Shown here one piece after another: positions 6,730 to 34,100 of a stretch of 45,535 bases of DNA. Position 1 is the stretch's first letter; every line of letters begins with the position of its first letter. The notes beneath the pieces were generated by a model that did not search any database, was not told where the DNA came from, and saw only the letters and a program-made list of their open reading frames with translations. Position numbers and translations under genes: made by a program. This stretch comes from Lenisia limosa (Eukaryota > Protista > Breviatea): NCBI GenBank assembly GCA_001655205.1, contig LPNZ01005159.1:1-45535 (forward strand), read 5' to 3'.

Positions 6730-9700
6730 ATGACAGAAGCAAGCAGGGTACCTCCAAAATTTGGGACATCAAAGGTTTGCTGCCCTTATCGCTTCACCTC
6801 TCTTACAAACCCAGATCAAAGGAGTTCTCGACAGAAAGAAGACCAAACTAAATCTTCTTGTCTCATCCAACAAACTTGAAAATCAGAAAGAGCAGACAAA
6901 TGTTTGTTTTGATTGAACTCATTCAATTCAAACGGATTGACTTATCGTATCCAGGACATTTTTGGACTAGTCCAGCTGTTGAAGCTTCAAAACACCGTCA
7001 ACAACATCAAAGGGCATAGTGAAGAACAGGAAGATGAAGATGGACTTGCTCAAGGTATCATTTCTGTTATATTTGTTATATATGTGGTTATCCGAGTTAA
7101 TCTTCTCAAATAATACAATTCAAATTGTTTTTACCTCCTAGTTGAAGAGCTTGTAGCTGAACTTTCTGTTTCAATAGATGAGTCCAAAGTTATTGGTAGG
7201 TAGCTGTGCTCAGATGAGCCGCAAACTTACTTGCCTAGCTGGCGATTTAGTTGAATTTTGGGATGACGACTACCAGCAGTCAATCACGGTGGACCAGAAC
7301 GGTAGGCAAATAATTTACATCAGGTAACCCGACTCTTCATGGCGTGTGTCCATCTTTCATCCAAAATGATTGATGCCATCTACTCTTCTCATCTTCACAG
7401 ACGACGATCTTCCGAACATTGCTCCTGAGTTCCGCATCCATGTTGCCTCTCTCAACGGACTGATTCACTTCTTAACACTCTCCGACTGTGGTAAGATAGA
7501 GTTATATATGTATAATATACTGTTATTCAGCTGTTTTGGCTTCTCCTCGGTTCCAAAAAAGAATGAAATAATTGATTAAATCGTTATTCTTCATATCTTT
7601 TTCCGCTGAAGGGACTGAAGGGAAGCCCAAGATTTTGTGACCCTGTAAATAACATCGTAGATAAGGGTTTTGAGAAGGCTTTCTTCATTACTATGAAGAA
7701 TTTCTGTCTCCCCCCCTTGTTCTTGAAAAAGTTGATCCAGAGGTTCCATGTACCAGCAACCGCCAAGCCCCCAAGAGGCAATCGGGACAGGTAGGTTAAC
7801 TCCTTCATCTCCACGTCTCCCTCAACAGGCCTTATTTAGGGACTTTTTTTTCAGGCTTTTTGTGTTTTCTTTTTTTGTTTTGCGGTCTTCACAGCCCAGA
7901 TGGGAGACGGCTATCCAACAGAGAACAATCGCTGTGATGGATAGATGGATAAATACCTGCTACTCTGACTTCCTTGCTGACCCTTCATTAAAGACTGTAA
8001 GTTGAAACCACCACACACACACTCTCTCTCTCTCATGTAGTTCTTGAATGAATAGGCAACTCAATGTTTGACACCGTTTTAGAGAGTTCAAGAGTTCACC
8101 CTTTCCCTGCAACGCCCTGATCACCTTCGCTACCGCACCCTTATTATCAACTCATTGACTCATAAGGTGTGATCAGCCTCCCTGAACAGTCGAAAAGTGT
8201 TGCTTTTATCTTCAATATTTCCAAATCACAGCCTATTTTCTCATCTCGTCTTTAGTCGGCGGGAGCCCTCCGGAAACAGGCACGTGGAATGTCGCTTGCT
8301 GGAAGTACGTCAACCGCCGCCCCTAGGGTAGGTCACTATGCCGTCGGGACAATGAGCTGATCTTTGATAGATTCTTCGCGTCAATTGCCCTGAACACAAT
8401 GGAGCTGTTAAGACCATGATTGTCAGCCCAGTGTCAACAGTTACGGATATGGTCATTAAGCTGAGGTGAGGAGGTGATAACCGTTCACGGACCATAACAC
8501 TGAGATTTAGTTATAGTGTTATTTGTAGCGTAAAGGTTGTGACGTTTCAGGGAGAAGCTCGATATTACGTCGTCAGACAAAAAATACACCATTGTTGAAG
8601 TTCGCGGAGGAGGTGAGCCGCTTGTGTAGAATCCTGTTTCCCAGCATTTTAGCAGTGCGTCATAAGACATTTTCGGCAGTAATTCAGCAGTATTCTAATG
8701 AGATTAGTCGGCAAAGTTCTGGCTCCCGATCTGAAGCTCTATGATTTGCTGGATTCTGAGACTGTAAGGGGAAGGAAGGTACAACAGTTGATATTGGCGA
8801 AAATGTATGAATCATCAATAGATTACATCAAATGATGTTTTTCTTCTCAACCCAAAATTCACCATTTTAGCCTGTTGAAGGAAGAAGCTTTGAGTTCAAG
8901 GCAATCGAAACTTCAAACCAAAAGGTCAGATTACATTTTTGTTTTTATTGGAAATATTATATACCACTCTAAAGCTTCTTTTTTGGATTGAATTGCATTT
9001 GCCCCATAGTGACGTTTCAGATTGTGGTGCGTGTTTACATCCCTGACGTTAAGCAAACCAAGGTTCTTCAAATCCAGTCGGATTCCACGACCAGTGATTT
9101 GATGTCTTCTGTTGGTATGCACTGGGGAGGCACGCAGAACGCTATGTGCACAGAGTTTTAAGGTAAATGATTGGGTGAATTAATATTTTACGATAATCCA
9201 ATTCGTTAATACGCGTGATGTGGACTGCTTCGGCCAGACACAACCTTGTTTTATTTCGAATCTCGATATTACATGTATGTAGGTCGGCATAGTATAATGA
9301 TTTTGGTTATCGAGTGGGGTTCAATGGTTTACATGGGTGAACTTCAGCTCATCACAATAAGTGATTCCGTAATACTATAAATATAACATTTTAGCGTCGA
9401 AAATTCTTCTCTCTGAAGAAGACACTCAGCATTATCAGCTCAGAATCGCTTCTTCCAAATCTGAAAGTTAGTTGCCTACCAACATCATAGTAAAACAAGA
9501 AATATGAGCTTAGGCAATCAACTTAACGCCATTGTTTTCTGTGTAACTCGGATTTTTAGCTTTGAGTTGCTTTACCTTCACTGAAAATTATTAAAAAAAT
9601 ATTTTTAATTGCATTAATTTCTTTAAAAAATAATTGATTATTCGATTCGTTATTAATACCCTAACGCCAAATTCTTCATCAAAATTTTATTCGTTATTAT

Positions 9701-11486
9701 TCACCCCCCCCCNNNNNNNNNNNNNNNNNNNNNNNNNNNNNNNNNNNNNNNNNNNNNNNNNNNNNNNNNNNNNNNNNNNNNNNNNNNNNNNNNNNNNNNN
9801 NNNNNNNNNNNNNNNNNNNNNNNNNNNNNNNNNNNNNNNNNNNNNNNNNNNNNNNNNNNNNNNNNNNNNNNNNNNNNNNNNNNNNNNNNNNNNNNTCTCA
9901 GAGGTATGCTGGTGGAATTCTCAGCTCTTTTCTTTTGTATTATTTCTTCGACAAGGTGGCTCATCTTTGATTCAAACATTCTTAATGATATGAATGCCAA
10001 GAAGCGCCATGTAGCATGGCTCTTCAACCATCTTTTTCTTTTTCATTGTAATGTTCTCACACTCCTTTAGCCGGCCTCTCAAGACATTTCCGTTCTGAGA
10101 TTTGATGAGGAGATTATGGCCGAAGAGCTCACTGTCAAAGCCTTCAGCCTGTTTTCTGCTGTTGAGGTGGGGTTTTGATTTTGCTTCATAATGATTCCAA
10201 AAAGGATGGATGAGTTGGGACTTCGTTTTATCAGACTATTTGCCCTTCATCATGCTCTTTCACGTTTTTCTAATTGTTAGGCTTTTTGCTTCATTAATCC
10301 CCCCCCCCCCCCNNNNNNNNNNAAAACTGTGAGGTTGACGCCCCGAACGTTTTGGCTCTGATTACGCAGTTCAACTTGGTCTCCAACTGGGTGGTGGAGT
10401 ATGAGGGAAAGTGTTGCAAAGGGATGCTTGAATAGATTTAACATTTCATTTAATAATATCATATCATATCATATCATATAAATAACACTTTCATAATGTT
10501 ATTTCTTCCACTTCGTGTTGATATCAAATGTAATTTTCCAGGTCGATTGTGTCCCAAGAAACAATATCCCGACGAGTGGCTGTCATGGTAGGCTGATTTA
10601 CTTTAGCTTTGTACATACATTCCTGTAATGAGTGGGTTTCACGTGTTCAGTCCAAAATGATCCGCTTGGCGGACCATTTGGAAGCGCTGCGGAACTTCAA
10701 CACTTTGATGGCCGTCGTTGCAGGTCTCAACAACTCGTCTGTCATGCGGCTCAAGCACACTTATTCTGAAGTCAAGAAGAAGCTCAGAACTGTAGGTTCC
10801 ATTTTGGCCTACCAACCTCACAATACAACTTCAACCCATGGACTGTGGTAACCCTAGTTGAAGTTTTTTTTAACGGATCAGCGTTTGGCTGCTCTGGAGA
10901 CACTTGTGTCATGCGAGTATTCGTACAAGGAGTACCGTTCGGCTCTCGCTTCAAGCCCGTCCAACCCCACTGTCCCTTATTTCGGTGAGAGGTGAACTAT
11001 ATTATCTAGTAAATGACATCCAAACCTCATTGACTAGGACTTCTTCTCTCCGACCTCACATTTGCTGACGATGGTAACCCCGGAAGAACCAGTCAAGGCT
11101 ATATCAACTTCAGGAAACAGTTCCTTCTCTCCAAAATCATTATGAACATGCTCCAGGCTCAAGTGTGTTTCTGATTATTATTGCTGCCGTTGCTACTATG
11201 TAATTGTTTAATGCGTTTCTTTACATCACTGTTGTTCACTGTTCTTGTTGTTCCTTTAACACTGTAGACAATTTCCTATCATGGTCTCGAGAGCTCCCCT
11301 CAATACACAGCGTATTTGGATACTTTCAAGAGCCTACCCTGCGACGAGGCTGTTCAATACAAGGTATTGTGGAGCCGGTCATACAATTTTTTTATTGTTA
11401 CATTAATATTATTGAAATCAGAATAACGATTTTAGGCGAGTTTGACTCTGGAACCTCGTGGATTTGAGCGAAGCTCTATCGCCTAG
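6730..11486 (+). CDS. Ras-family guanine nucleotide exchange factor: REM + two RA/ubiquitin-like domains + CDC25 domain (more than 20 exons, spans two N-gaps)
   Basis: REM: DKGFEKAFFITMKNF..FLKKLIQRF and IQQRTIAVMDRWINTCYSDF. CDC25: EEIMAEELTVKAFSLFSAV, LADHLEALRNFNTLMAVVAGLNNSSVMRLKHTY, VPYFG|LLLSDLTFADDGNP..GYINFRKQ, ending LTLEPRGFERSSIA* (TAG 11484-11486). Confidence 0.9.
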
Positions 11487-11604
11487 TTTTATGTTATGTT
11501 ATTATTTTTTTTTTCCATTTTTGTAGTTTTGTACTTAAATAGGGGTTTGTTTGTTTTAGTCATGTAGATTATTCTCAACCAAACAGGAGTTTGACATCAT
11601 TACA

Positions 11605-14343
11605 TTACAATTTATGCCTTGTGATGAAAAACACAATATGCTCAGCTGTCGTTTCAGGGTTGTCTTCATGGATGGCATGACCTGAATTGCCATAAATGAA
11701 TATGAATGTTTCTCAGCCTGCAATCAAAACAATCCTTTGATAACCAGAAATAGACACCCCACTGACCAGCGTTATACACCACACAAGTTTGGAATTTCCC
11801 CATCATTTGCGCAATTGTGAGGTCCTGAAGAAGGTCATAGTTATCTTTTGGAAGAAGTAAAAACGATTTCCATAGACTGCTACGCCATGACAACCTTGTC
11901 CAATCTGTCTGTTCCAGCTAAAACAAGAACCTTGGGAACAGATGTGTCCAAGAAGTCCTGAGAGAGTCCTTTGTACCACCCTAGAGGTTAGAAGCAATCG
12001 TCTCAAGCCAGAAGATATGAAGGAGTTCAATGTTTACAATGCAGAGAGAAAAAGAACAACTGTCACTCAAAACAGGCCACAGCAAACCATTCCAGAAAGG
12101 CTGGGACGCCCCAAGGTCTGTTCGCCACGTCAGCATGTTACCTTGGGATTTTTTCGATCTACTCGATCTGTGGAAACAGATAACAAAAAAAGAGAGAAGA
12201 CAGTTCTTCAATCTGATTATCTCATATGGCCGGGCCAAAGTAAAGCACTATGACTCATAGAATTCAAACCTTTGCATCAATCTTTGGCTCAGATTCAACC
12301 CAGGGCGATTTGCTTCAGTGTGAGAAAAATTAAATCAGTTCGTCTGTTGGTCCGAAAAAGTAATCCAAATACTGAAAGAATGAAAGGTATTATTCGATGT
12401 TGTCGAAAGAATGAAAGGTAATTCGATGTATCTGTGTATTATTTGGTCTAGTTCCAAGCATAAGCATTACAGAAATAATAATGCACGGAAGATGAGACAC
12501 AAACCTGAAGGAGACGGGGGGAGAGAGCTCGACGATCTGGGGGCAGGTGGCTTCATTGCTGAAGGTGGGGGTCGTTTCATTGCTAGTGGAGAAGGGGTTT
12601 TCTCAGACCTGAATTGTAAGATAGAAAATGAAGAGAAAAATAAACCAAATACAGCGAAAATAGATTTTCTCATGTCTAAGCAATAGCTCACGAAATACTG
12701 TCGGGTGATGGCGGAAGGTCAAGCGACCCTGTTCCTTCTTCTTCCTCTTCTGCTACGGTGTTGATTCTAAAAAAAATAAGTACACCAAAGAAACCCCATT
12801 AAAAGATTACCCACTCTTTTGGAGCCTCAATTGGGGACATGAAAGCAGGCCTCTTGGGTGAAGGTGACTCCTGGCCCTTTGGAAGGGGGCGGATAGTGGG
12901 GGGAATGGAAACTCGGGCTGACTGCGCGTTACGAATAGTATTGCTCTTTACCCTATAACGTGATGATAGAATGCATGTATACTCACACTATATCTAGATA
13001 GAGTATCATACTAGTATTATATATGATATATATCATATGATATATATTAAAATATCCATATCATATCATATATTATACTACACAATAAATTGATATGGAT
13101 ATTTTTGAGCTTCACTTTCAGTTCCAAAAGACATCTTATCGATATTTATCGAAAATTAAGTCTTAATCCGGAAGAGTAACTTATACATATTTTCAGAGTA
13201 TATATCATATGGTACAATGACCATAAATCTCTTTCTAAACAAAAAGGTCACCATACTCACGCATATTCGATGGCCATTTCGACAGTTCTGAATTTCTGCG
13301 GTCTTTGTGAGAGGAAATACGGCATATGTGGCAAAGCAGACAGCGCAGTACCTTCCACAACTAAAAACCATGACACAGTGCTTGCAACCTGAATACTGTT
13401 CCATATCCACAAATAATGTACTATATAACCAAAATGAGAGTCGGAATAATAAAAGAAGACAACATTAGGGTCATCTCGAGTGTATTACAGTTTCATGAAT
13501 GTCAATTACCCATGAGGACATGAGGGGACATGGTTATCACCGCGTGAAAAAGATAGTTAGAATCTGAGAAAATGGCTCAAAAGTGACATTACTGATCATG
13601 CAGTTCCCACCGTCAATGACAAAGAGTCCCTTGAGGCCTCTGATGACACCCTGATTTGCTGCCCTCACAGCCACTGCACCACCCATGCTGTGCCCAATCA
13701 CAATGACATCCTTGTCTCCTGCGAGGTCAGATCACGGCTCCGGTTGCGTATATCTTACCAGTAACGGCTGTTGCTACTTTGCCGCAATCCTCAACAAGCC
13801 GCTCAATTGATAGGTCACTGTCATCCTCTGTTTGTGAATCACCTATAACAGTCAAAGGGAATATTGTAATCCCAACTAACCGTGACCACGACAATCGTAA
13901 GAAACCACCTGACATACTTCCTTGACGTGTGGCTACTGTGTCACAACGTAGTAGTAGTAAATTAGAATGTAGAACCCATTAATCCTCTTACAGCCAAAGC
14001 AGCGAAAGAAAGACCTGCCATACCCCCTCCATGCAAGCAGAAGAGAATAGGTCCACTTGACTCCTCCGTTTTATACACCATAAATTTCTACAAATTCAGA
14101 TAAAAAAAACACAACTATTTAAAAATGGTACCTTCCATCAACTCCCCTTACATCATTTCCAATTTCAACCATATCTCGAGTTGCAAAAAAATCTGACCAG
14201 GGAAGCGGAGATGAGTCAAAGGGTTCCATTTCGCCTGGTCTAAATTCAAAATAAAACATAGTGTAAGATATGAGAAGGCAAAAGACCCTTATAGCTGAAT
14301 ACCTTATAGGTGGCGCGCCAGTTTTAAAGATTCCCCTTTGCAT
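11605..14343 (-). CDS. PPME1: Protein phosphatase 2A methylesterase 1 (PME-1), multi-exon
   Basis: Spliced motifs SPLPWSDFF, LFCLHGGGMAGLSFA, IVIGHSMGGAVAV (nucleophile elbow), LFVID|VVEGTALSALPHM..RPQKFRTVEMAIEYA|VKSNTIRNAQSARVS, LTWRTDLGASQPFWNGWYKGLS, VLAGTDRLDK|DLTIAQMMGKFQ, GHAIHEDNP. All are collinear with human PME-1 and yeast Ppe1. Confidence 0.93.
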
Positions 14344-20983: not shown

Positions 20984-23900
20984 ATGAGTGAACCATTGGC
21001 AGAGGAGCTACCTCCTCTTTTCCACTCATCATCTCAGAATCTTCCAACTGCAATTCCTCGCCACCTACAGGATGCCAGCCCCCCTAAAGACAGTAATGGG
21101 ACCTCATCAGATCGTCTTAATAGACCACCTGAGGTGTCGACGCTTTCCCTCGCCTCGGACAGTCTAGGCTTCTCTCCTGTAAATGGAATGGGAACTGATT
21201 CTCTCCCAACTCCACCTTCTTCTAATGCTTTTGGACCAACTGACAGATCAGCGTCCCCAACTTACAGGTGTGTTGGATAGATGGTTCATATTTTTACAAT
21301 CTTCTTTTCCTATTGTCGTTTTTTTGCTGTTCTCCAAGTAGTTTTGTGTTCGCGCTATAATATGTGTCTTTTGAAATCATCACTCCCTAATAGTAAATAA
21401 TACCTGGGAATCTGGTAATACAACTCTTTTGCATTGTCTAAGATTCAAAAATTACACAATATATGGAGATATTCCATTAACTCAAGGCCGAGTCATACAA
21501 TCCATTTGGAGCATTGGGTAAGAAGGGACCTCCAGGCACCTATTAACGCCAGCAGGTCACAGTCACCATCCACGGTCCGGCTGAAGGCTCAGGGCCAGAA
21601 TCGCAGGAGAGCCCAGTCTTCCGAGCTCTTTGAGGGTCGCGGCATGGCTCGGTCCGGCAGTATTTCTGGCATCCCTTCTTCGCATGTGGGGCATGCGGAG
21701 GGACCTACAAGGATGCAGCATTCTTCTACATTTGTGATCCAGCAAGATGTGCGTGGGGTCTTTGTTTTAGATCAATTTGAATGACGTGTGTTGTGAATTT
21801 TGATTTGTATTATTACAATAAAAGTTAAATCTCACGATTTAGCAAGAAGAAGATGAGTCTCCTTCAGTTTCCGCCTTAAGACATGCAGTGCGTCCTCTTT
21901 CCGGTTTGTATCTCCATTTCCTAGTGACAATTGATACTGTTTTTGAAGTAAACCTAACTTTCAAGGTGTCTCCATCCCCAACGCTATTATTGCAGCAGTG
22001 TCCGTAATAGTTTTTTGGTCACTTCTTCTTTTATTGGAGACTGCTTCACTGCTCTTTTTCCTCATTTCAGTCCCAATCATTATCTACCTCTCCTTTGTCC
22101 AACTAATGGTGAGACTTTGGTGGATTGGAGGAATTGAACTATGTTCTTCCACCTATGTATTCGATATATTGTATATATTTTATGTGATATAATACAACTA
22201 TATATCGATATGTATATATATGTGTGTAGTTGATGCATATATAGTATATATATGTAGTATATATGTAGTATATATCTATAATGTATTTATGTATGTACTA
22301 TATTATAGTATATAGTATAATGCATGTACATACATATATCATATGTGTTCACCCCAAATAGCTTCTTCACGAATGTGTGCACTTCAACATCTACCGTGGC
22401 CCCATGGCCTCTAACATCAGCATGGTTCTTGCTGCCGTCTTCTCTATTGCGTCTGGCCCCTTCAAGTGGGCCCTGGTGATTTGAAAATTGCATTACTATA
22501 ACGCTAACAATTGCTGTTTATTCGTCAATTGTCTCGTATTTCCAACTGCATCACCACCCTTACCATTTCAGTCTGTTCCAGCNNNNNNNNNNNNNNNNNN
22601 NNNNNNNNNNNNNNNNNNNNNNNNNNNNNNNNNNNNNNNNNNNNNNNNNNNNNNTTCGGACACCAACCACTCAAGGAAGGATCCTCATTGCCGAAACCAG
22701 GCTTGTATGTCTTTTTTTACCATTCACTGGTCTATTTCGATTGATGGAGAATTCGTTTCTACTTTTCTACTCCTTTTCTAATTATCACAGTCGGTAGCAT
22801 GACATCCCGGGTGTACAGATGGGCAACGTCTGACGCAGCTTACTTCAAAAACTACGTTTCTGCGATTGAGCATAGGCCCAACAAGGAAGTGGTATGAAGG
22901 CCCAAAACTACTCAGTTATTGAAACTTGATAATTCACTGTTTTCTTAATGGTATTTACTGTTTACTATTCTCTCCGTTCTTCATCAAAGAGTAGAACAAA
23001 TACATTTGATATAATATCAATCGATATAGATATATATAGTATATATCATAAAAAATTATCTTTTATGTCACCCTTATCAAATTTTTTGTGAATCACAATA
23101 TCTCCATTGGCTTTCTTTTGGGTGATATTATGGTACTAAAGCACACTTTTTACCTTCTGCTGAACCCAGTATTCCTAACTCTTGACTTTTTTTCTGCTTT
23201 CACGATACAGCTGATGTCGGTGTCGCAATTGGCCCTCGCTATCTTCTTTCTTCTCATGCTTCTCGCAACCAATCATATCATGGTTAGATGGGACATTGTT
23301 GATATTATCCGCATGTTTTCTTCTCAACTTCTTACATCTTGATATCTTGTTCTAATCCCTTTAGATTGTGATCACTCTCCTATTTTGTGGCAGAATGGCG
23401 ATTCTGATGTACAGCATTGGTATGGAAGCCATCCCCCACACCAAAGTACGCGGCTTATTCTCCAAACCTGAGAGCGATACAAAAACTCCACAAAATTCCA
23501 AAAGAACTAAATTTTTCAATCTATTATTGTTTTTCCTTCTCTGTCACATCCTAGACTCCTTTCTCACACTCTGTCCGCTACCAAATCACACGGTTTATCT
23601 CGTATCCAAGGTGAGTCATTCTACTTTTGGAGTTTTAATGGTCAATTATTTAACACAATTAACGTTCCTTAGCGGACTTGGCGTTATTATGTATTATTTA
23701 TCTTTGGGTGCAACTGAGCACCCCCTCCATCATCAGTTCCCTTCTGTCCCCTGGTATAGACTTAGGTTGGTTACCCTAAGTTTCATTTATCTGTTGATTA
23801 CTCAAATGAGTGTCAAAATCAAGACCACTTTGCTTATTCTTGATGCTTCTTTTCGTATCATATTGTTATTGTGATGTTGTGGACGGCTTCGGTCAGATAC

Positions 23901-24100
23901 AACCTTGTTTTTTATTTCTCATTTCTATATTATATCATATGTATACAAATTCAAAATATTGAGCTTTTTCATCTTTCTGTTATTAACGTGATGAAGAGCT
24001 TTACCACTGACTATGTAGGGCTCTCCACCAATATAACAACTGGAACACTAAGTACTCCAGTGTCCCAGTGGAGAAGGCTCTCAGTGAGTTGTTGAATTAG
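20984..24100 (+). CDS. Membrane-bound His-box fatty-acid-desaturase-superfamily enzyme, CrtR (beta-carotene hydroxylase)-like, with long Ser/Pro-rich N-terminus
   Basis: TM exon ..LISVPIIIYLSFVQLM|LLHECVH (box 1, 22368-22382). After the gap, SDTNHSRKDPH is the TN..DP motif that normally follows box 2, so box 2 presumably lies in N-gap 22583-22654. Then MEAIPHTK|TPF..ITRFISYP|SGLG.. and box 3 HPLHHQFPSVPWYRL (23719-23733). No HPGG cytochrome b5 domain seen. The 3' end is approximate. Confidence 0.75.
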
Positions 24101-24306
24101 GTTAGGTTTCTTTTTTGATATCCGGTAATATACAGTTTTTTTTAGGAAATTATATTGCAATAATAGTCATGAAAAATAACCTTGTTTATACTTATAACCA
24201 CTCAGTCATACATAACAAAACCAAATTTTACTTTCAGGGGAAAACAAGGACCATTAATTACCATGTTCAAGTTAGACAGCAAGTGGTCCACTTGACTGTT
24301 GAAGAA

Positions 24307-27300
24307 TCACACCATTGACTTGATAAAAGGGGTTGTGATGAAGGCGATGATACGTTGTATTATTGTAAGGGGCTGTGAGACCCTTGAAGTGTCTTTGAGA
24401 AGGGAGTCATATTCCTGGTTCATCAAAAGTAGAACACCACGTTGACATGGAAAATTATCAGATTGCATTGTGTTGTCTTTGCTCTCTCAAATCCCACCAA
24501 CCTCTTTAAACATGAGCTTCACTTTGGGGTTAGACGTCAACACTGCGAAGTCCAACTCAATGTCTCGGGAAGTGCTTCGTTCTCCTTAACTGTAAGTCCA
24601 AAAACATGCAATGTAAACTGAGAAATTCCCTGCTTTCCACATTATAATAAAAAAAAGCTATCGAAAAGGACCGAAAAACATCGAAATTAATCAAGACATT
24701 CACGATGAGGGTCGTCCCAAGGTAAGAGTGCATACCGTAGTTTGAACTCCCGATGATGAAGGCGGAAGTTCTATTCTTACGCTCTTCTGCCCAAATACCC
24801 TTACAGTGAAAACTCCTGATGAATAAGAGCAAACAAAAGTTGTGTTTGTGAAGACAAATATTCAATGTAGAAGGAAATCTCCTTATTAATAATAATAATA
24901 TTGCATCCCACCCATACAATTTCCATCAGAATCCCCATACCAATCCTTCTTATGCCAAGAGTTGACACTCTTTGCCTTGAGTACATCCACAGCTTTTCTT
25001 AGAATGCCATCATGCACATAAGGAACAAGCCCCAGAAGATGAGGGGCAGTGAAAAATCCATGGCTCTAGAATTTGTTATGAACATGGATGCGGTTCAAGA
25101 CAAGAAATACGATTTGGAAACCTATTAAAACTGCCATTTTGCTTTTCAAATCACAGAAAAGCAAAAGGTATTCAATATTCCTTTTACAATCTATTCGTAA
25201 TATAAAAACCCACTTTGATACTAGGCGCCAAGAAATCAAGGCGCCCACACCCTAGGGTCTTGAGAGAGGCAACGAATGACTTGGGGAAACTGCAGTAGGC
25301 CGAAGAAATCTAAAGATAATTGCCCCATTTCATATCTTTCACAAAACCACAATTCAGCTTACCTTCAGATCCACAGTCGAGGAACACACCATCGTAGAAA
25401 TAAAGGATGACGATCGAGAAACTCCAAATCCTGGAACTAAAGAATAAAAGAAGTCGGCAAAAGGAAAGGCAATGGTTTTAAAAAGTATACCTTGGAGAAG
25501 AGGGGCAATGATGGTGTCAGAAGTGACGTCGGTAGGATATTGATTCACCAAAGCGTGAATCGAATTTGAAGAACTAGCAGAATCTAGCAAAAGTGTTAAT
25601 ACAAGGATTTTTTATTTGATTATTATTCAAAAACTATGATAAATAAGACTAATACGGATGAAGAACTGTTTCAAAAATACGAGTCATAATTGACAACGAA
25701 CCTGTATTTGGAACGTCAAGCTGTCCGGCTTCTAAGAGGGTGTACGAAATGGGTTTGACGGCAATGGCCTAAAGATTCAGGAAATTAGGTCTGGTACATG
25801 ACTCTCCACCACTCGTGAGGAATGCCTACCAAATCTTCCATCCAATTTGCCAATTCAGGACAATTTGAGATTGACAAATAGCGATCTATTCGATCGGTGA
25901 AGTATGACGTAGCCAGGTTTGCTCTGAAACTGGTGACATATGACACTACAAATTCAGTTTCTAAGCAGAGGGTATTTAAAAGTTGCTCTATCCCTGTAAT
26001 CATCAGTAATCCTGAGCCTACCCTGTGACAAGAACATCGTCATCAGACACAATGCCCTTGACATGCCACACTGTTTCTAACTCCCCAAGTCGGCCGGAAA
26101 TAATGGGCCAAAAGAGCGACCGCAAGAAGGGTGATGATGGTGCCGGCGGCAACACAAATTGAACCTGCGACATAAGATGTTAACCCATATGATATGATAT
26201 CCACGAGTGATATGATCTATATGACCGAATTTCGAGTCGAAATGATGAACGAAGATAACATGAGGGTTCATCCCGAGTGTATCAGGGTATCATTGACACT
26301 TGTCGGCAATTACCATCCGAGTGGATATGAGGTGTCATATCAATGCGTGGAAAAAGATAGTGTGATAATAACTCAAAAAGTGATGTGATAAACTGAGACA
26401 GCTCACCCTCTTCAGTTCAAATCAAGGACTCGAACAAATAGCAAATAAGGAACACTCACTTTAAGTCTTTCTCCGTGACGGTCTTTGAGTGGTGCCAAAA
26501 GAGAGTATGCAGATGTAACCTTTGATTTATTCGGTAATTGGGGGCAAAACTTGTCAATAATACGATGGTACCTGTTTTGTGAAATTTGAACTTGTGAATA
26601 GCGCAGAAATATTTGAGTAAAATACTAGTAGCATCTAACGAACCAAAAGGTTTTACTCGGACGAGCAAGAACTCCAGAACTTCCCCGGGTGCCTCTTCTA
26701 GCGTCAAGCATAATGGTAGCTTCCAAGTCAGGCCGTGTTGTGAGAGCTGTGTCAATATGCTGGACCTAACTGTGTTAACAAAGTTTATCAACAAAATAAA
26801 AAAGACAAACTGTCATAGGAATACCAATTACATTCTCATCTTTTTATTGTTCAACATTTTATCAAATTTCAAAACAAAACGTGTATTCCCTGTGCCTATA
26901 GTAGCAGCTTTTATAATACTTCTACATTATGAAGGTATTGATAAATTTCGGTTCTATTTGTACTTTTTTTTTTTGATATGGTATTCTACTTCTGATTTAG
27001 GATACTGAGTTTTTATTTTAATCGCCAGGAGTCTTCCACTATATTTAAATATCATGCCCCACAAACTAATTTGACTTCCTCATGCTCAGCAAGGTAAAGT
27101 GCCGATATCACGAGTCGATTTCTGCATTGTCATAAGTGACATTTATGAGAACAGGTTTTTACTCAATGGAAGATATTTCAAGAAAACAACAACCAATAAT
27201 GTATACTTACAAACTTTATCAATGCAACAAAAACTTACTTTGCCGTTGCTATCATCCGAAGAACTTGGGTGCAAAACTCTGATGGTGCCCCCAATAACTG

Positions 27301-27439
27301 GAGCTAAAGAGGATTGTTAGATCAAATTTAGGGGGAGGGAAGCTGGCTAAGATGAAATGGGTGAATAAAATATTGGTTTCTATCATACTTGAGCATTGTG
27401 AACGGCAAAGCCTTTGAGGGAGCGAGCTAGGAGATCCAT
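24307..27439 (-). CDS. PGS1: CDP-diacylglycerol--glycerol-3-phosphate 3-phosphatidyltransferase (PLD-type phosphatidylglycerophosphate synthase), multi-exon
   Basis: NRLVISALYLAE, VWHVKGIVSDDDVLVTG|ANLATSYFTDRIDRY (first HKD-like motif), DTIIAPLLQ, HGFFTAPHLLGLVP, SFHCKGIW..IIGSSNYG|ERSTSRDIELDFAVLTSNP (second motif). Collinear with eukaryotic PGS1. Confidence 0.9.
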
Positions 27440-27701
27440 TGAGAGAGGAATCAAGGAAAGCTAGCGCAACTTATACGCTCGAACACATATAAAAGTTCGT
27501 TACTGGATATTAGATTTGGCTTCTAATCCACTAACACCTCTCCCCCTTGCTCTCCCCNNNNNNNNNNNNNNNNNNNNNNNNNNNNNNNNNNNNNNNNNNN
27601 NNNNNNNNNNNNNNNNNNGGGACAAATGCTTCACTCAGAAGGACTAGTAACAAATCTTTTGATACATAGTAATAAATTGCATCTAATAAACTTATTTTAC
27701 C

Positions 27702-30700
27702 ATGTGGGAGCCTCGTCCTGATGAATACACATTTAGTGAACCTGACTCGATTCCTTCTACAAAGGAAATGAAAAATATTTTCAATGAAATGACTGATAAA
27801 CTCATTAATACACAAGAAGACAATGGATCTTGGAGGTAAGGTGACTTTCTTTCAACTTTGAAAGAGCTTATATTTCACTTACATTCTTTAGATATCTGCT
27901 AGAGGGATCTGCTATTGCTGAATCATACTTATTACTTGCTTGTGCCTTGTTTCCAGACTATGTTCCGGATTCGTCCTTGATCACCAAAATACTTGAAGCG
28001 CTCCAAACGATGCAGGTCTGTTTTTCCTTCATCAATTATATAACAGAATCGAAATGATTATAACTGATGGATGAATGCACGTTAACTCTTATCCTGCACA
28101 GCAAAGTGATGGTGGCTACGCCCTTTACCCGACAGCTACCTCGGATTACTCCACATCCCTCGAGGTAGATCATAATGTTACAACTTACTTCAGAAAATCA
28201 AATTGAATAATATTATAATTATTAAATAATAAGAAATTAAAATTAATCTAATTATCAACACTTTGGACATTTGGACGAAATGTAACGGAATAAATTGTTA
28301 TTGTAACGATTTTCTTGACCTCCTGAGGTGTACATTGCCTTCCGAGTATCCGGGCTGAAAACCGACCATCCAAGTGTTCTTCGTCTTCTCGACTTCCTGA
28401 CTATGGCCAGAGACTCAAAACAGGCTCGGTGGGAGCAAAACCAAGACCCATGTAAATTGAAATTCATGAATCATAAAAGCCTCTTAATTGTGATCCCTTT
28501 TATTCTGTATTTTTTATTCTTTTAGGCTAACAAACCTTACCCGCTTGGCACTAGCCACTCTCGGTATTATGTCTTGGAGTGACATTCCCATTCCTCTCCC
28601 TGAACTGGTTTTGTTACCCACGCCGGTTCCGCTCTCTCTCTACTCTTTTGCGGCCTTCACAAGAGCTCACTTGTAGGCAAGATTGGAGTGTATTAGAAAA
28701 CAAAACATTGTTCATCCATTCAGGGTACCATTTATGGTTGTCGCACATTATAAACCAAAACCTGCTGTAAGCTAAATGGAATATTGAAATTGTTCAAAGT
28801 TCAATCTCAAAGTTCTTTTCATATCTCCAGTTTCCATACTTGATTGATGAAGTCAAACCGTTCATCACAGAGGATATGAAGACTCTTACTGCCGGCCTGC
28901 CCTTCAGAATGTTGTACAAATCGGGGACTCTTCCGCTTTGGGCTATTGGTGAGTTGGAATTGGCCATGTTTAACATATAAATTAAGGAAAATCAGCTGTG
29001 AGGACCAAAGCACTGGATTTCTGTCGACAATACATCCTACAGGTTGGTAAAACGCCCATTCCTACTTCTCTTTTTCAGTACGGTGTTCTCCTGAGTTATC
29101 AATACTATTTTGTCGTTATTTTATGCCAAAATAACAGTTTAGCGTCTTGAAAGTGACCACAGTATTGGGTCGTATATCTTGTCAACAATTTACGCGATGA
29201 TTGGTCTCAACGAAATGGGTCATGAGGTCAGAAGTAGCGTCCTGTTTTTGTATTATTTACATATTTTTTCGAGAATTACGGATCAGGAAGATCGAGTGTT
29301 ATTGCCCCGAATGCTTGAAGGAATGATCTCATGGACAATGGAACACAACGGACAAACCAGAATGCAAGTTGGTTCACGTTATCTGGGAACTTTTATGTCA
29401 AATGTGACTTCTAAGGTATGTACATCAACCCTCTGGGATACTGCCCTCAACTCAGTACTTCTTCGACAATTGGGTATGGACCACTCCAGTGAAACACTCA
29501 AAAAATCTGTGGAATACCTCATGGCAAGACAATGTTCAGTATGTGTTTCGTATTTTGTCCTCGTCACAAAATTCAGCTTCGAGAACTCAAGACAATTACG
29601 CCCAACATGTCGGGTGCTGCTTGGGGATTCATGGATGTTAACAAGTACTACCCCGATGTTGACGATACCATCTCCGTTCTCGAGACCATCCGAGGTAAGA
29701 GAACGATGTCTGCTGGGATTACCACAAATAGGTCACAATGATGGTCTCTTCAAGCGCGGTCTGTCATGGATTCTTCAAATGCAAAATGCTGATGGCGGGT
29801 ACGCGGCGTTTGACGTCAACTGCGACTCAAAAGTAGGCGTTATTTATAAAACAAATGGCACTGTGAATCAAAGGAGTATGACAGTCCAGCTTGTGGAGTC
29901 AATTCCGTTCAACGATGTGATAAGGTCAATGACGGACCCCAGTGTTCCGGATATGACAGCCCGCGCATCACGTTTCCTTCTTCATGAGATGTTTGCAGCT
30001 GGTATTTATTGCTAAACGCATCAATTGCATCAATTGCATCAATTGTATGACTTTTGTAGTGTCGACAAGCGAGAGACCTTGGACAGTCCAACAGGTGTTG
30101 CTGTAAAGAAAGCCCTAAAATGGCTTGTGAACGAGCAGCGAGAAGATGGAAGGTGAGTCATATTGAAACATTGGCTCTTAATGTCCAGCTGGTTTGGCAG
30201 ATGGGGCATCTGCTTTATCTTTGGAACCTGGAGCGCCCTGTGTGCACTGGCTGAAACTGGCGTCAAGGAAAACACCGCTGAAATGTGAGATAAAGAGTTA
30301 TTGTCTTGACCGTCCAGTCCTGAAACAAACGCAAGCAGTGCGTTAGCTCCTCCAAATGCCAACGACGCGGTAACCAAAGGAGCAGCATTCCTTAGGGACA
30401 CTCAGAACCCTGATGGAGGATGGGGGGAGGCTTGTTTAGTAGGCTCAAAGCTCAGGGCATTCCACTCCAAAAATAGTCGTAATGAGCAATAATGGGATAC
30501 TGACCATACAGTCCGACCAAGTGACCCGCTTTGTGCCGCGCCGGACTAGTCAGCCTTCAACCTCAGCCTGGGCCCTTGAGGCCCTTGTCATGGTGTCACG
30601 TGACCCTCTCAACGGTACGTGGTATTGCTTTTCGCAGCTGTTCATTGTATCAGACCCTGCAATTCAGAAGGGTCTGGCGTACCTACTGAAGAACTACGAT

Positions 30701-30874
30701 CATGGATGGAAGGACACATATCCAACCATGAGTGGATTTGCTGGGGTAAGTTCAACGTTAACAATTCTGACCACCCAGAAATTATACCTTCTCTATCACA
30801 ATTATGCTGATTTATGGCCAACCACTACACTTTTGCGCTATGTCAATCACCCAATGGTGAAAGCGCAACTCTAA
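27702..30874 (+). CDS. Class II triterpene cyclase, squalene-hopene cyclase family (SqhC-like); about 20 exons, about 650-670 aa
   Basis: QW repeats (TQEDNGSW, MQQSDGGY, MQNADGGY, EQREDGSW, TQNPDGGW). RMQ|VCTSTLWDTAL. WGFMDVNKYYPDVDDT with the DXDD protonation motif at 29655-29666, rather than the OSC DCTAE motif. DPSVPDMTAR, WFGRWGICFIFGTW, STSAWALEAL, SGFAG|KLYLLYHNY..WP. About 19 GT-AG introns with consistent phases. ATG 27702 is probable, but an upstream exon could be hidden in gap 27558-27618. Confidence 0.93.
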
Positions 30875-31122
30875 TTCATGCACATCATCCATCATGTTTT
30901 TTCTTTCATCATGTTATTTTGATAGTTTCTGATTTTACAATATATCCTCGAATTCCAGTCCACTCACCCGTATGGCCTGCCTATTGATACTAAAATACAA
31001 TAAATACATTAACCAAGATCAGGGTCTACTACCGACTGCCCGCTAATCACTCTGAAAAGTCAGCTTCCTTTACTCCCATCGAAACTATAATCAAGAGTCT
31101 CTCTCAGACCCCACCCCACTCC

Positions 31123-34100
31123 CTACAAATCTGGGGAATCAACTTCATCCTCATCCTCCATTTGCCCGAATTGCCCTGACTTCAGCTCAGAGTATAGGGA
31201 AAAGAGCCTACATCAGTATTAACTGGGTTGAAACAGTTTGATTGAAATAGTCCCCTCTCCTACAAATGAAGTGGGTGAATTCGTTCCCCTCCATAGACAG
31301 GAATATCTGTGAGCGCTAATGCAACATCCGCATATTGCTCCGTGGTCAGGCTGATGTCACTAGAAATGTCAAAAATGATGAAGACAGAGCACTTCAATCT
31401 TAGATTAGATAATGTTTACTTCTACACTTGTATCAATACCTGGGAGGTGGGAACTCCAACTCGTCTAAGGCAGCCTCGAAGTCTTCAGGCCACACTTGCA
31501 TCCTATCAGGATTAGTTATGTGGTTATTATTCGAAAAAAACTTCACTTTAAACCCAAAAAAAAAAAAAAAAAAAAAAANNNNNNNNNNNNNNNNNNNNNN
31601 NNNNNNNNNNNNNNNNNNNNNNNNNNNNNTAGAGGATTGACGGTTCAAAAAGTAGAAGTAAAGGCATTTGGTCAAAAAGAATGAACATCTCGATTTAGTC
31701 AATAATATCATATGCACATATGATACCGCTTACAGTTGCTCAATATCTGGCATGTTTTTACGGTACTGCACTTGAGGAGGAGGGTTGTTCCGGTGTAAGT
31801 CCTAACAAATTAGAAACAAAGCTCAATATCCGCTAATTGGAAGGTAAAGAAGCCGGAGTCACCTGGATGCTTTGGATCCAGCCTGTGACCAGCGACGGGT
31901 TTGCCTCGGGGTCCTGAATGGATCGAATGGCCACGTCGCCGACTGGAACATGTTTGGATGCAGCTCGGAGCTGAAGTTCAAGAACTAAAGGGTCAGCAAC
32001 CAAATTACACCACTTCTTCACATGCAAAAACTATCACGTAAAAAACGCTACACCAAGCCACAGACTAGAAGGGTCACTTGACGCAAGCGAAGGCTCATCC
32101 ACACGCACTAAACCCGAGCCGTCTTCCTTTCCGTCCGGTCGCGGTATCTACGAGTCAAATAATACCACAAAGAAAAGACAAAAAATTGATGAAAGCCTGA
32201 AACTTCATATCACTGTTATTAAGGCGGCTATTAGAGGTTCCCTCCAACTCAAGCCAAACACGTGTACCTTAAGGAAACCGTCACATTCGCCGACAGCAGG
32301 GATGTATTCGGGAATGAATGGTCGTTGTCGGATCTCAATTGAAACGCTCTGGGGCTGATACCGACCAATGTGCATAAAAAGGTCTCGGACCTATCCAGGA
32401 TTAAATCTGAGATTGGCAAGGCGACAATCTTCAAGTGGGCTTCACTGCGGTCCCGAAAAGACCGGTAAAATACCAATAGTTATTGAGGATTTATCGAGAA
32501 TTCAGTCTTTTTTTGTAACCAAATGAGCCCTAGTTGTATGTAGTAGTAATATATCATATAACACATTGAACAATGATATAAAATACATTCAATCCCAACT
32601 TTTTATGCTTTCCATATCCAGTGTAACCTACCTCTTCGTCAACATTCAGCGCTTCATACTCCTCAGCTTTATATCCACTGAACTATGAACAAAGCTTGTG
32701 GAAAGAAAAGATTTCATGGATTATAAACTATAATATTCAAAAGGGTAAATGATCAACAACCAAAAGAGTGAACTCCTTGACCAAATACAAAAGGAAAAAA
32801 CGGAATTGTAGGAAAATCACTCGCACTCGCCGGAAAAGCGCAGTGTTTTTCCGGGGAAACACTCAAGATCCATTCAAAATTAGACAAATTAGACAATCTA
32901 TCTAACTCCAGATCAAAGAAAGAAAGTCAGAAACTAAATTTAAATACACATTATTAACTAATGAAACTATAATTTAAATACACATTATTAGCTAAAAGAA
33001 TACACATAAAGAAAATGACTGATCATCAAAAAAGTAGAGATCCCTGGATGAATGGTGGTTGGTCAAAGAATATTTTGAATGGAAGGTGGAAGGGGACTTG
33101 CTCCTCCCAAAGAGCACTTTCCCTTTTTGCTGCCCTCTTAAATTATTTTTCCTGAGTTGTTTCCAACCGAAAATGTTTCGGGTTTTTTACGTAGCCTACC
33201 CTGGTTTCACCGGGGAGTGGTCCATCTGATCTAATTGATCATAGTTGTTTCCAGCAGCCTAAGTAGTCAGTAACACTGGAGGGGATTGGATGATGGAATA
33301 CAGCCCGCATTTTCTCACCAAAAAGGTGTGTTCAGGATCTTCAATATCCTCACTATCAACCACCATTGGTCCTGAGGGAGCAGGGGGAATTTCACCTAAA
33401 AAATAAAAAACAATCGCGAGACGCTGAGAACCATAACAACACATCTGGTCGTTTGGAACGTCATAATTAAAACAAATTTAGCAATAACAAACATCAAGAC
33501 AAGGTTATGATGAAAAAGGTAACTCCACCCACTTCCATATTCGCGCATCATTGTGTCTTCACCTGTTTTAATAAGAGTGAGCTATGGTAAAGAAAATGAT
33601 AAAAAAAAAAAAAAAACTGAGCAATGCCCACCTCCATAATCCCTAAGCATAGCATCCTCATCGGAAGTGTTGTGATGATCTTCATGAGCTGAACTGTATT
33701 AACAGGCATCGACAACGACGCTCAAACAATATAATCGAACAACTAAGGAAGATAACCCATACAAACCCATTCCTGGGGGGCTGTCCTGGCCGACTTCACT
33801 GGAAAGGCCCTCATCTCCTGGGTGTGTGACATATAAAATAAACACACCATTTATTTTTTTGATATGAGCATCGAGAAGTGAGTATTTCTTTTTTGATATG
33901 AGCATCGAGAAGTGAGTATTTCTTTTTGATATGAGCATCGAGAAGTGAGTATTTCTTTTTGATATGAGCATCGAGAAGTGAACATTATCATGAACAACAA
34001 AGCTTGCCATTCCTAACCACCTACTCTGAGGGGCGATATCACTGTCGTCGTGTCCTGAAGATTCTGAAGAGGAAACGTCAATTGCTTCGTCAAAAGGCTG

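Follow-up and report, generated by a model that had tools for sequence, protein, structure and literature searches.

A candidate oxygen-independent squalene cyclase of bacterial ancestry in a flagellated protist

Eukaryotes living without oxygen must replace sterols. Two surrogate routes are established, one in which squalene-tetrahymanol cyclase (STC) gives tetrahymanol and one in which squalene-hopene cyclase (SHC) of the crown group gives hopanoids, known from S. japonicus and likely also used by Anaeramoeba. These O2-free precedents are documented for STC (PMC3317845, PMC7440791), for S. japonicus Shc1 (PMC8364164, PMC11976957), and for Anaeramoeba (PMC11550330), and in published trees STC and the Bacillota enzyme SqhC appear as small groups beside SHC (PMC12414744, PMC7306690). 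Here we describe a cyclase gene at 27702-30874 (+) of contig LPNZ01005159.1 from Lenisia limosa, a stretch of 45,535 nucleotides (nt) that we refer to as the window. We consider it moderately probable, from sequence comparison, that this gene encodes an O2-independent squalene cyclase acquired by an old bacterial transfer, whose product replaces sterols in a flagellated protist; the host is probably a low-oxygen one. It suggests one more independent acquisition, seen in two protists, with another, uncharacterised bacterial clade as its source. A description of a breviate cyclase or of this bacterial clade was not found in the limited collection of papers searched.

Family membership and relatives of the window cyclase

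As its motifs and domain matches indicate, the window protein is a complete class II (DxDD) triterpene cyclase of the SHC family and not an oxidosqualene cyclase (OSC), which agrees with what a sequence-only reading had proposed for the same coordinates. The open spliced frame encodes 661 amino acids (aa), and its exons match the Pfam N-terminal domain PF13249 (37.7 bits) and C-terminal domain PF13243 (43.7 and 33.9 bits), with weaker PF13243 matches of 25.0 and 22.2 bits under the 26.1-bit cut-off; these and the following exon scores were obtained with single exons or stop-free pieces. In NCBIfam, each matching exon scored best with TIGR01507 (hopene_cyclase) or with the broader squalene/oxidosqualene subfamily TIGR01787. 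TIGR01507 gave the highest single-piece score, and five separate exon pieces total ~135 bits on this model, the whole-protein cut-off of which is 431.1. The OSC model TIGR03463 reached 13-16 bits per exon versus a cut-off of 851, and the OSC and bacterial tetrahymanol-synthase models scored far below TIGR01507 and TIGR01787. The clade to which the protein belongs (below) scores 141 bits against human OSC versus 343 bits against the SHC of Alicyclobacillus acidocaldarius (AaSHC). In alignment, the DVDD motif matches AaSHC D374-V-D376-D377 and is invariant in 67/67 sequences, including the window protein; it differs from the catalytic motif of OSC. The window protein also carries three strict QW repeats and two further Q..G.W motifs.

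The cyclase gene is a transcribed, intron-rich nuclear eukaryotic gene. Our hand-built model has 20 exons and 19 GT..AG introns, the last six exons are joined in polyA RNA, and the 661-aa product is collinear from end to end with two homologs, P0002 and P0003. P0002 is a Pygsuia biforma transcript (EukProt) with 39% identity to the spliced model over 668 aa, and P0003 is a protein from a Syntrophobacteraceae metagenome-assembled genome (MAG) with 40% identity. Bacillus SqhC, a Paenibacillus sporulenol synthase, and one Alicyclobacillus protein show 29-31% identity to the spliced model.

These relatives come from searches of two sizes. A 290-aa stop-free read-through open reading frame (ORF) at 29143-30012 was run against 1.84 billion representative proteins, followed by blastp with the spliced model, while two further queries, the Pygsuia protein on its own and a profile of the clade that included window exons, were run against 5.8 billion proteins, with the best 120 matches of each retained. 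Among these best 120 matches are about two dozen proteins of uncultured 'delta'/Syntrophobacteraceae MAGs (40-45% identity), followed in rank by a planctomycete-type group and then by Bacillota and crown SHCs. Pygsuia biforma is the one other eukaryote among the best 120 matches of either query, in keeping with the earlier claim of a rare eukaryotic lineage. Pygsuia is an anaerobic breviate, which is compatible with a low-oxygen life of the window organism. STCs were found neither among the best 120 matches of the Pygsuia protein or the clade profile, nor among the 61 matches of the window fragment in the 1.84 billion representatives, as judged by the 20 named ones and the full-length ones placed in trees, nor in Swiss-Prot or AFDB-cluster fold searches with the Pygsuia protein model. 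With one genome per GTDB species, the bacterial clade comprises 10 loci, all in uncultured MAGs.

Phylogenetic analysis separated the window protein from crown SHCs. Three trees, made with FastTree (181 sequences), by a quick posterior mean site frequency (PMSF) analysis (67 sequences), and by a careful LG+C20+F+G4 PMSF maximum likelihood analysis (44 sequences), are concordant on the grouping. Crown SHCs form one clade (100/100) with the window protein outside it. The remaining sequences form a stem group (100/100) with three components: a planctomycete-type grade, the SqhC enzymes of Bacillota (100/100), and a clade of MAG and eukaryote proteins (100/100), the last of which holds 11-21 'delta'/Syntrophobacteraceae MAG proteins. 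The window and Pygsuia proteins are sisters within this clade (99/97), and the pair stands beside the MAG proteins rather than among them (82/84). As a check for long-branch attraction, each of the two eukaryotes was removed in turn, and the other still fell in the same clade (100). Approximately unbiased (AU) tests, for which the groups were named before testing yet after the first tree had been viewed, rejected a union of the pair with SqhC (log-likelihood difference 134, p 1.9e-64) and with crown SHC (log-likelihood difference 90, p 1.8e-5). The latter is the position among canonical hopene cyclases that had been named in advance as contrary to a new lineage. In addition, the window and Pygsuia proteins alone carry two inserts, one following the GVK segment and one following LLHE, which are missing from every bacterial clade member; at the protein level they correspond to 30271-30366 and 29985-30085 of the window. 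By these affinities the window protein belongs to an uncharacterised stem clade common to Pygsuia and to uncultured Syntrophobacteraceae/'delta' MAGs.

This position helps to define what the locus shares with described systems. Like the STCs of ciliates, Stygiella, Sawyeria, and Neocallimastigomycota, it is a bacterial-derived SHC-family gene in scattered eukaryotes that would permit sterol-free membranes without O2. Unlike these enzymes it has Phe in place of a diagnostic His, and STCs are not among its closest database relatives. It resembles S. japonicus Shc1 and the Anaeramoeba SHCs in representing an independent bacterial-to-eukaryote transfer of an SHC-family gene associated with low-oxygen life (PMC8364164, PMC11550330). 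Shc1, however, derives from crown SHCs of acetic acid bacteria and makes hopanoids, whereas the window gene derives from the uncharacterised stem clade; the Pygsuia counterpart and Shc1 share 27% identity. A structural model of the Pygsuia counterpart (predicted template modelling score, pTM, 0.93) has the same fold as the AlphaFold model of AaSHC (P33247), with a template modelling (TM) score of 0.81-0.86. The closest relatives are the Syntrophobacteraceae/'delta' MAG cyclases (P0098, P0003, and others; 40-45% identity), which unlike the window gene are bacterial, intron-free, without the two eukaryotic inserts, and usually located beside radical-SAM and MMPL genes.

Active-site residues, bacterial context, and possible products

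Residue mapping used a 67-row alignment and P0003 aligned with HMMER to the sequence of the Alicyclobacillus structure; AaSHC numbering applies throughout. As in AaSHC (PDB 1GSZ, 2SQC), the window protein has equivalents of the initiation and cation-pi residues D374-V-D376-D377, W312, F365, W489, F601, L607, Y609, and Y612. Unlike AaSHC, it is changed at E45, Q262, P263, W133, R127, F605, W169, and Y495. Several of these changes are features of the stem group, which differs from the crown in having Tyr for I261, Thr for W265, Phe or Tyr for W169, an aromatic residue or His for E45, and Leu for P263 (Ser/Thr in SqhC), and an SY.xST segment stands where crown SHCs have GIQPPW. The polar network that terminates hopene formation is replaced in the window protein by Tyr at E45, Ile at Q262, Leu at P263, Asn at R127, and Ala at W133, and the replacements at E45, Q262-P263, W133, and R127 span the whole clade. 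Crown SHCs themselves retain E45 in 11/16, Q262 in 9/16, and P263 in 15/16 cases. F605 has become Leu in the window protein, a residue also present in 2/16 crown SHCs.

The sequence-only reading had described the protein as following Bacillus SqhC, on the basis of the segments FAAFTRAHLVP, YILQRLESDHSIGSYILSTIY, TSTLWDTAL, WGFMDVN..PDVDDT, RWGICFIFGTW, and LYHNY. All of these segments are present, and the SqhC strings given there for comparison are close to those of a real Bacillus SqhC (P0025). The likeness holds in so far as the protein is nearer to SqhC than to the crown. Bacillus subtilis SqhC and its Bacillota relatives share the stem group with it, as well as DxDD, QW repeats, ~30% identity, the Tyr and Thr of the SY.xST segment, and the replacement of E45 and W169, and the SqhC-like segments noticed earlier are explained by this shared stem-group signature. 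The further step to an SqhC-type enzyme does not hold, since the SqhC clade excludes the pair and the diagnostic residues disagree. At F601, the C-ring Phe, the window protein is unchanged, in contrast to Leu (n=11) or Met (n=3) in SqhC, and the Bacillus and Geobacillus exceptions at this position are noted in PMC3317845 additional file 1. The clade has Leu at F605 and Phe at F434 versus Phe and Ile/Leu in SqhC. At Q366 the window protein has Met and other clade members have Gln, against Ser in SqhC; at F437 the corresponding residues are Val, Met, and Ala/Gly. The window gene is moreover eukaryotic and filled with introns, unlike that of SqhC. Compared with the MAG cyclases, the window protein has the same active-site signature apart from Y495, which is Phe in the two eukaryotes only, and its own residues at Q366 and F437. 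A His at the F601 position (Nostoc 608) is strictly conserved in STCs (PMC3317845 additional file 1). It is absent from the window protein (SGFAG) and from Pygsuia (TGFAN), both of which have Phe.

The gene neighborhoods of the bacterial relatives provide context for this clade. A B12-binding radical-SAM protein and, in convergent orientation, an MMPL transporter come after the cyclase in 8/10 species-level loci; they are relatives of HpnP/HpnR/HpnJ and HpnN but distinct from them. This cyclase/radical-SAM/MMPL module lies at ~8000-13900 in each of loci L007-L013 and L015, at 10001-15869 in L001, and at 10001-15917 in L003, and a GT28-family glycosyltransferase is found upstream of it in two loci. 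A planctomycete-type relative has an MMPL neighbor as well. The module of the Syntrophobacteraceae-type MAGs has the look of a pathway, as yet uncharacterised, in which a cyclic terpenoid lipid is made, modified, and exported, and the gene order fits a cyclic isoprenoid lipid that would be modified and exported to the envelope rather than a spore-associated C35 pathway. P0098, the closest bacterial relative (45% identity; L004 / L006 2155-10761), is flanked by three GHMP-kinase-type mevalonate genes, a type 2 isopentenyl diphosphate isomerase (IDI2), 3-hydroxy-3-methylglutaryl-CoA reductase, and a prenyl diphosphate synthase that scores best as the short-chain type. A full mevalonate-pathway cluster of this kind is unusual for a delta-type bacterium.

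In the explanation we favor, the donor would have been bacteria related to the present uncultured Syntrophobacteraceae/'delta' MAG lineages, and the transfer would be old enough for 19 spliceosomal introns to have been gained. The product would be a monotopic, proton-initiated class II cyclase drawing squalene from the mevalonate pathway of the host. The Asp equivalent to D376 would protonate the terminal double bond of squalene, and the chain, folded against the equivalents of W312, F365, F601, Y609, Y612, and W489, would yield a polycyclic C30 lipid with no O2 used. By analogy with STC, Shc1, and Anaeramoeba, this lipid may stand in for membrane sterols. With a hydrophobic termination site (changes at E45, Q262, P263, W133, and R127, and Leu at F605), the end product could be something other than hopene or diplopterol, and because the site has been rebuilt with hydrophobic residues the product cannot be named from sequence. 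It could be a new sterol surrogate, could give a function to a cyclase clade of uncultured anaerobes, and bears on the interpretation of triterpane biomarkers. More tentatively, and with less than even confidence, the eukaryotic pair and the Syntrophobacteraceae-type clade might form a new class of squalene cyclase making a skeleton that is neither hopane nor gammacerane, used as a sterol surrogate in the protists and, in the bacteria, methylated by the B12 radical-SAM protein and exported by MMPL. Such a class would offer a so far unassigned biomarker source for anoxic sediments.

Several observations weigh against the O2-independent surrogate cyclase that we favor. None of the three trees contains STC sequences. 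RNA for exons 1-14 was not found in assembly X2 or in a second search, so that the RNA covers exons 15-20 and the earlier exons rest on splice rules and collinear homology; the model is weakest at exon 7 and at the intron 14 donor. Y495 belongs to the acid-activating network of AaSHC, and its replacement by Phe could lower activity. A squalene synthase gene was not found next to any bacterial relative examined, and for this reason squalene is only a presumed substrate. Finally, a desaturase-like gene 4 kb upstream of the cyclase belongs to an O2-using family; its presence would be unexpected in an anaerobe, as the organism is supposed to be, and suggests some oxygen exposure.

An ordinary cyclase forming hopene or diplopterol, in which the sequence differences have no effect on the product, is an unlikely but substantial alternative that would make the gene one more case of a known adaptation. 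It would account for the preference of the exons for TIGR01507 or TIGR01787, with the top single piece on TIGR01507, for the scores of 490-502 bits with which bacterial clade members pass the TIGR01507 cut-off, and for the retention of F601, L607, Y609, Y612, W312, F365, and DVDD, and Leu at 605 is found in some crown SHCs. The clade-wide loss of the terminating water network (E45 Tyr, Q262-P263 Ile-Leu, W133 Ala, R127 Asn) speaks against it, however, as do the score of the Pygsuia counterpart, which at 382.5 bits falls below the same cut-off, and the AU rejection of a union with crown SHC. A true SqhC-type enzyme, acting on a C35 substrate like tetraprenyl-beta-curcumene or making bicyclic or onoceroid products from squalene, would fit the common stem group, the SY.xST segment, the non-Trp aromatic residue at W169, and the name 'sporulenol synthase' that IMG assigns automatically to clade members and that the ESM Atlas clusters nearest to the Pygsuia counterpart also bear. 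We nevertheless regard it as quite improbable from its sequence, given the AU result (p 1.9e-64), the unshared residues at F601, Q366, F434, and F437, and the short-chain type of the prenyl synthase beside P0098. Moreover, eukaryotes are not known to have a curcumene synthase, and nothing was found in favor of the sesquarterpenoid or onoceroid product suggested by the sequence-only reading.

Formation of tetrahymanol, by a divergent relative of STC or by convergence, seems similarly improbable. The likely low-oxygen protist host is what would be expected from STCs, and published trees put STCs near Firmicute-type or stem SHCs in the same region of the tree (PMC7306690, PMC12414744), but where STCs have their His (PMC3317845 additional file 1) the window and Pygsuia proteins have Phe. 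Neither the best 120 matches nor the named or placed ones of the 61 fragment matches include an STC. That the gene is a functionless, decaying relic or a bacterial contaminant is very improbable indeed. RNA depth is low, with the 3' part alone assembled, and Y495F could be read as decay; on the other side stand a frame that is open over 20 exons, introns that are all GT..AG, polyA-selected spliced RNA, conserved catalytic and cavity residues, and two spliced eukaryotic neighbors on the same DNA contig.

Exon structure and transcription of the cyclase gene

The cyclase coding region (27702..30874, +) runs from an ATG at 27702, the first after in-frame stops just upstream, to a TAA at 30872-30874 as an open spliced frame, including the stop, that aligns with P0002 and P0003. 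Its introns are 33-163 nt long, six of them 33-39 nt, and 27702-30874 (+) lacks a long bacterial-style ORF. Three introns (29227-29286, 29368-29415, and 29833-29889) are in frame and stop-free, and because of this a public prokaryote-style gene call, P0001 (266 aa), reads through exons and introns and includes one out-of-frame exon. Prokaryote-style calls such as this conceal the real cyclase protein in database searches.

All exons are on the + strand. Exon 1 (27702..27835), defined by the upstream stops and N-terminal homology to the clade, holds the start codon and the first QW-like motif, Q..DNGSW. Exon 2 (27892..28015), with Tyr at the E45 position, is supported by GT..AG borders, homology, and residue mapping, and exons 3 (28102..28164) and 4 (28328..28428) by GT..AG borders and homology. 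Exon 5 (28526..28672) carries Phe at the W169 position, identified by residue mapping, and gives the Pfam SQHop_cyclase_N match of 37.7 bits. Exons 6 (28724..28766) and 8 (28996..29042) again have GT..AG borders and homology. Exon 7 (28831..28948), between them, is a variable loop ~20 aa shorter than in relatives; it is defined by GT..AG alone and is the least certain. In exon 9 (29143..29226), placed by homology and residue mapping, GSYILSTIY replaces the crown-SHC GIQPPWFY. Exon 10 (29287..29367) is flanked by in-frame, stop-free introns, the removal of which restores AaSHC spacing. Exon 11 (29416..29538) encodes TSTLWDTAL with the W312 equivalent and was aligned to AaSHC 307-348 and residue-mapped. 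Exon 12 (29577..29694) encodes WGF, with the F365 equivalent, and the catalytic DVDD, and is supported by mapping and by the SQHop_cyclase_C match of 22.2 bits, below the 26.1-bit gathering score. An alternative acceptor of intron 11 at 29591/29592 was rejected because the loop before WGF would become 5 aa shorter than in all relatives. Exon 13 (29732..29832) contains the QW motif RGLSWILQMQNADGGY, as supported by Pfam, AaSHC alignment, and residue mapping. Exon 14 (29890..29990) encodes IPFND..DPSVPDMTAR, with Arg at H451; its untypical donor GTTTGC is the sole GT..AG solution that keeps the frame.

For the remaining exons there is RNA. A 438-nt polyA RNA contig (assembly X2, from the same study as X1) joins exons 15-20, with three GT..AG joints seen directly (30284>30318, 30438>30512, and 30613>30653) and two further joints implied by loose ends that agree with the 3' end of exon 15 and the 5' end of exon 20. 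Exon 15 (30060..30152), which carries a QW motif, contributes its last 13 bases to one loose end. Exon 16 (30189..30284) encodes GRWGICFIFGTW, in which W489 is retained and Phe replaces Y495, and is supported by the RNA contig and by a Pfam C-domain match of 33.9 bits. Exon 17 (30318..30438), bounded by the first two joints, holds a eukaryote-specific insert and a QW motif. Its start had been a candidate at 30336 (intron 16 acceptor 30335/30336), which the RNA joint refuted in favor of 30318, 18 nt earlier. RNA joints also delimit exon 18 (30512..30614). Exon 19 (30654..30745) follows the joint 30613>30653 and encodes SGFAG, in which residue mapping identifies the kept F601. Exon 20 (30779..30874), supported by mapping and by the RNA loose end at 30745, encodes KLYLLYHNY, with F605 changed to Leu and Y609 and Y612 kept, and ends with the stop codon.

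Genes around the cyclase in the window

A single DNA contig (2016 data set, run X1) spans the cyclase gene, which lies on it between two spliced eukaryotic genes, and these flanking genes are those identified by the sequence-only reading, PGS1 and IFT46. PGS1 (24185..27506, -), head to head with the cyclase gene, is covered by a 1566-nt polyA RNA contig at 24185-27506 (-) with at least 14 CT..AC joints. This RNA translates to a phospholipase D-type phosphatidylglycerophosphate synthase with both HKD motifs present, and a weak Pfam PLDc match is present on one exon. IFT46 (31039..32375, -; part seen) is tail to tail with the cyclase gene and has RNA joints of the CT..AC type. Of three ORF pieces at 31260-32375 (-) that match Pfam IFT46_B_C, two exceed the gathering score and one falls short of it. 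The B12 radical-SAM and MMPL exporter genes usually found beside the bacterial cyclases do not adjoin the cyclase gene in the window.

PGS1 and the cyclase gene are divergent, with 5' ends less than ~200 bp apart (27506-27702) including an assembly gap of N at 27558-27618, and the two may share a bidirectional promoter. The desaturase-like gene is a spliced, transcribed piece at 22700-24100 (+). Its ORF 23368-23874 matches Pfam FA_desaturase with 24.1 bits versus a gathering score of 29.7 and contains a third His box, HPLHH..P..PWY. The product could be a desaturase or an enzyme of the ketolase/hydroxylase type. FA_desaturase is a family of O2-dependent di-iron enzymes.

Far from these genes, at 2060-2960, lies a 900-bp imperfect repeat rich in GAA/GAG with nested periods of 12 to 225, which gives that kilobase its extreme GC and AT skew. 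Were it coding, this repeat would specify a Glu/Lys-rich, low-complexity protein segment.

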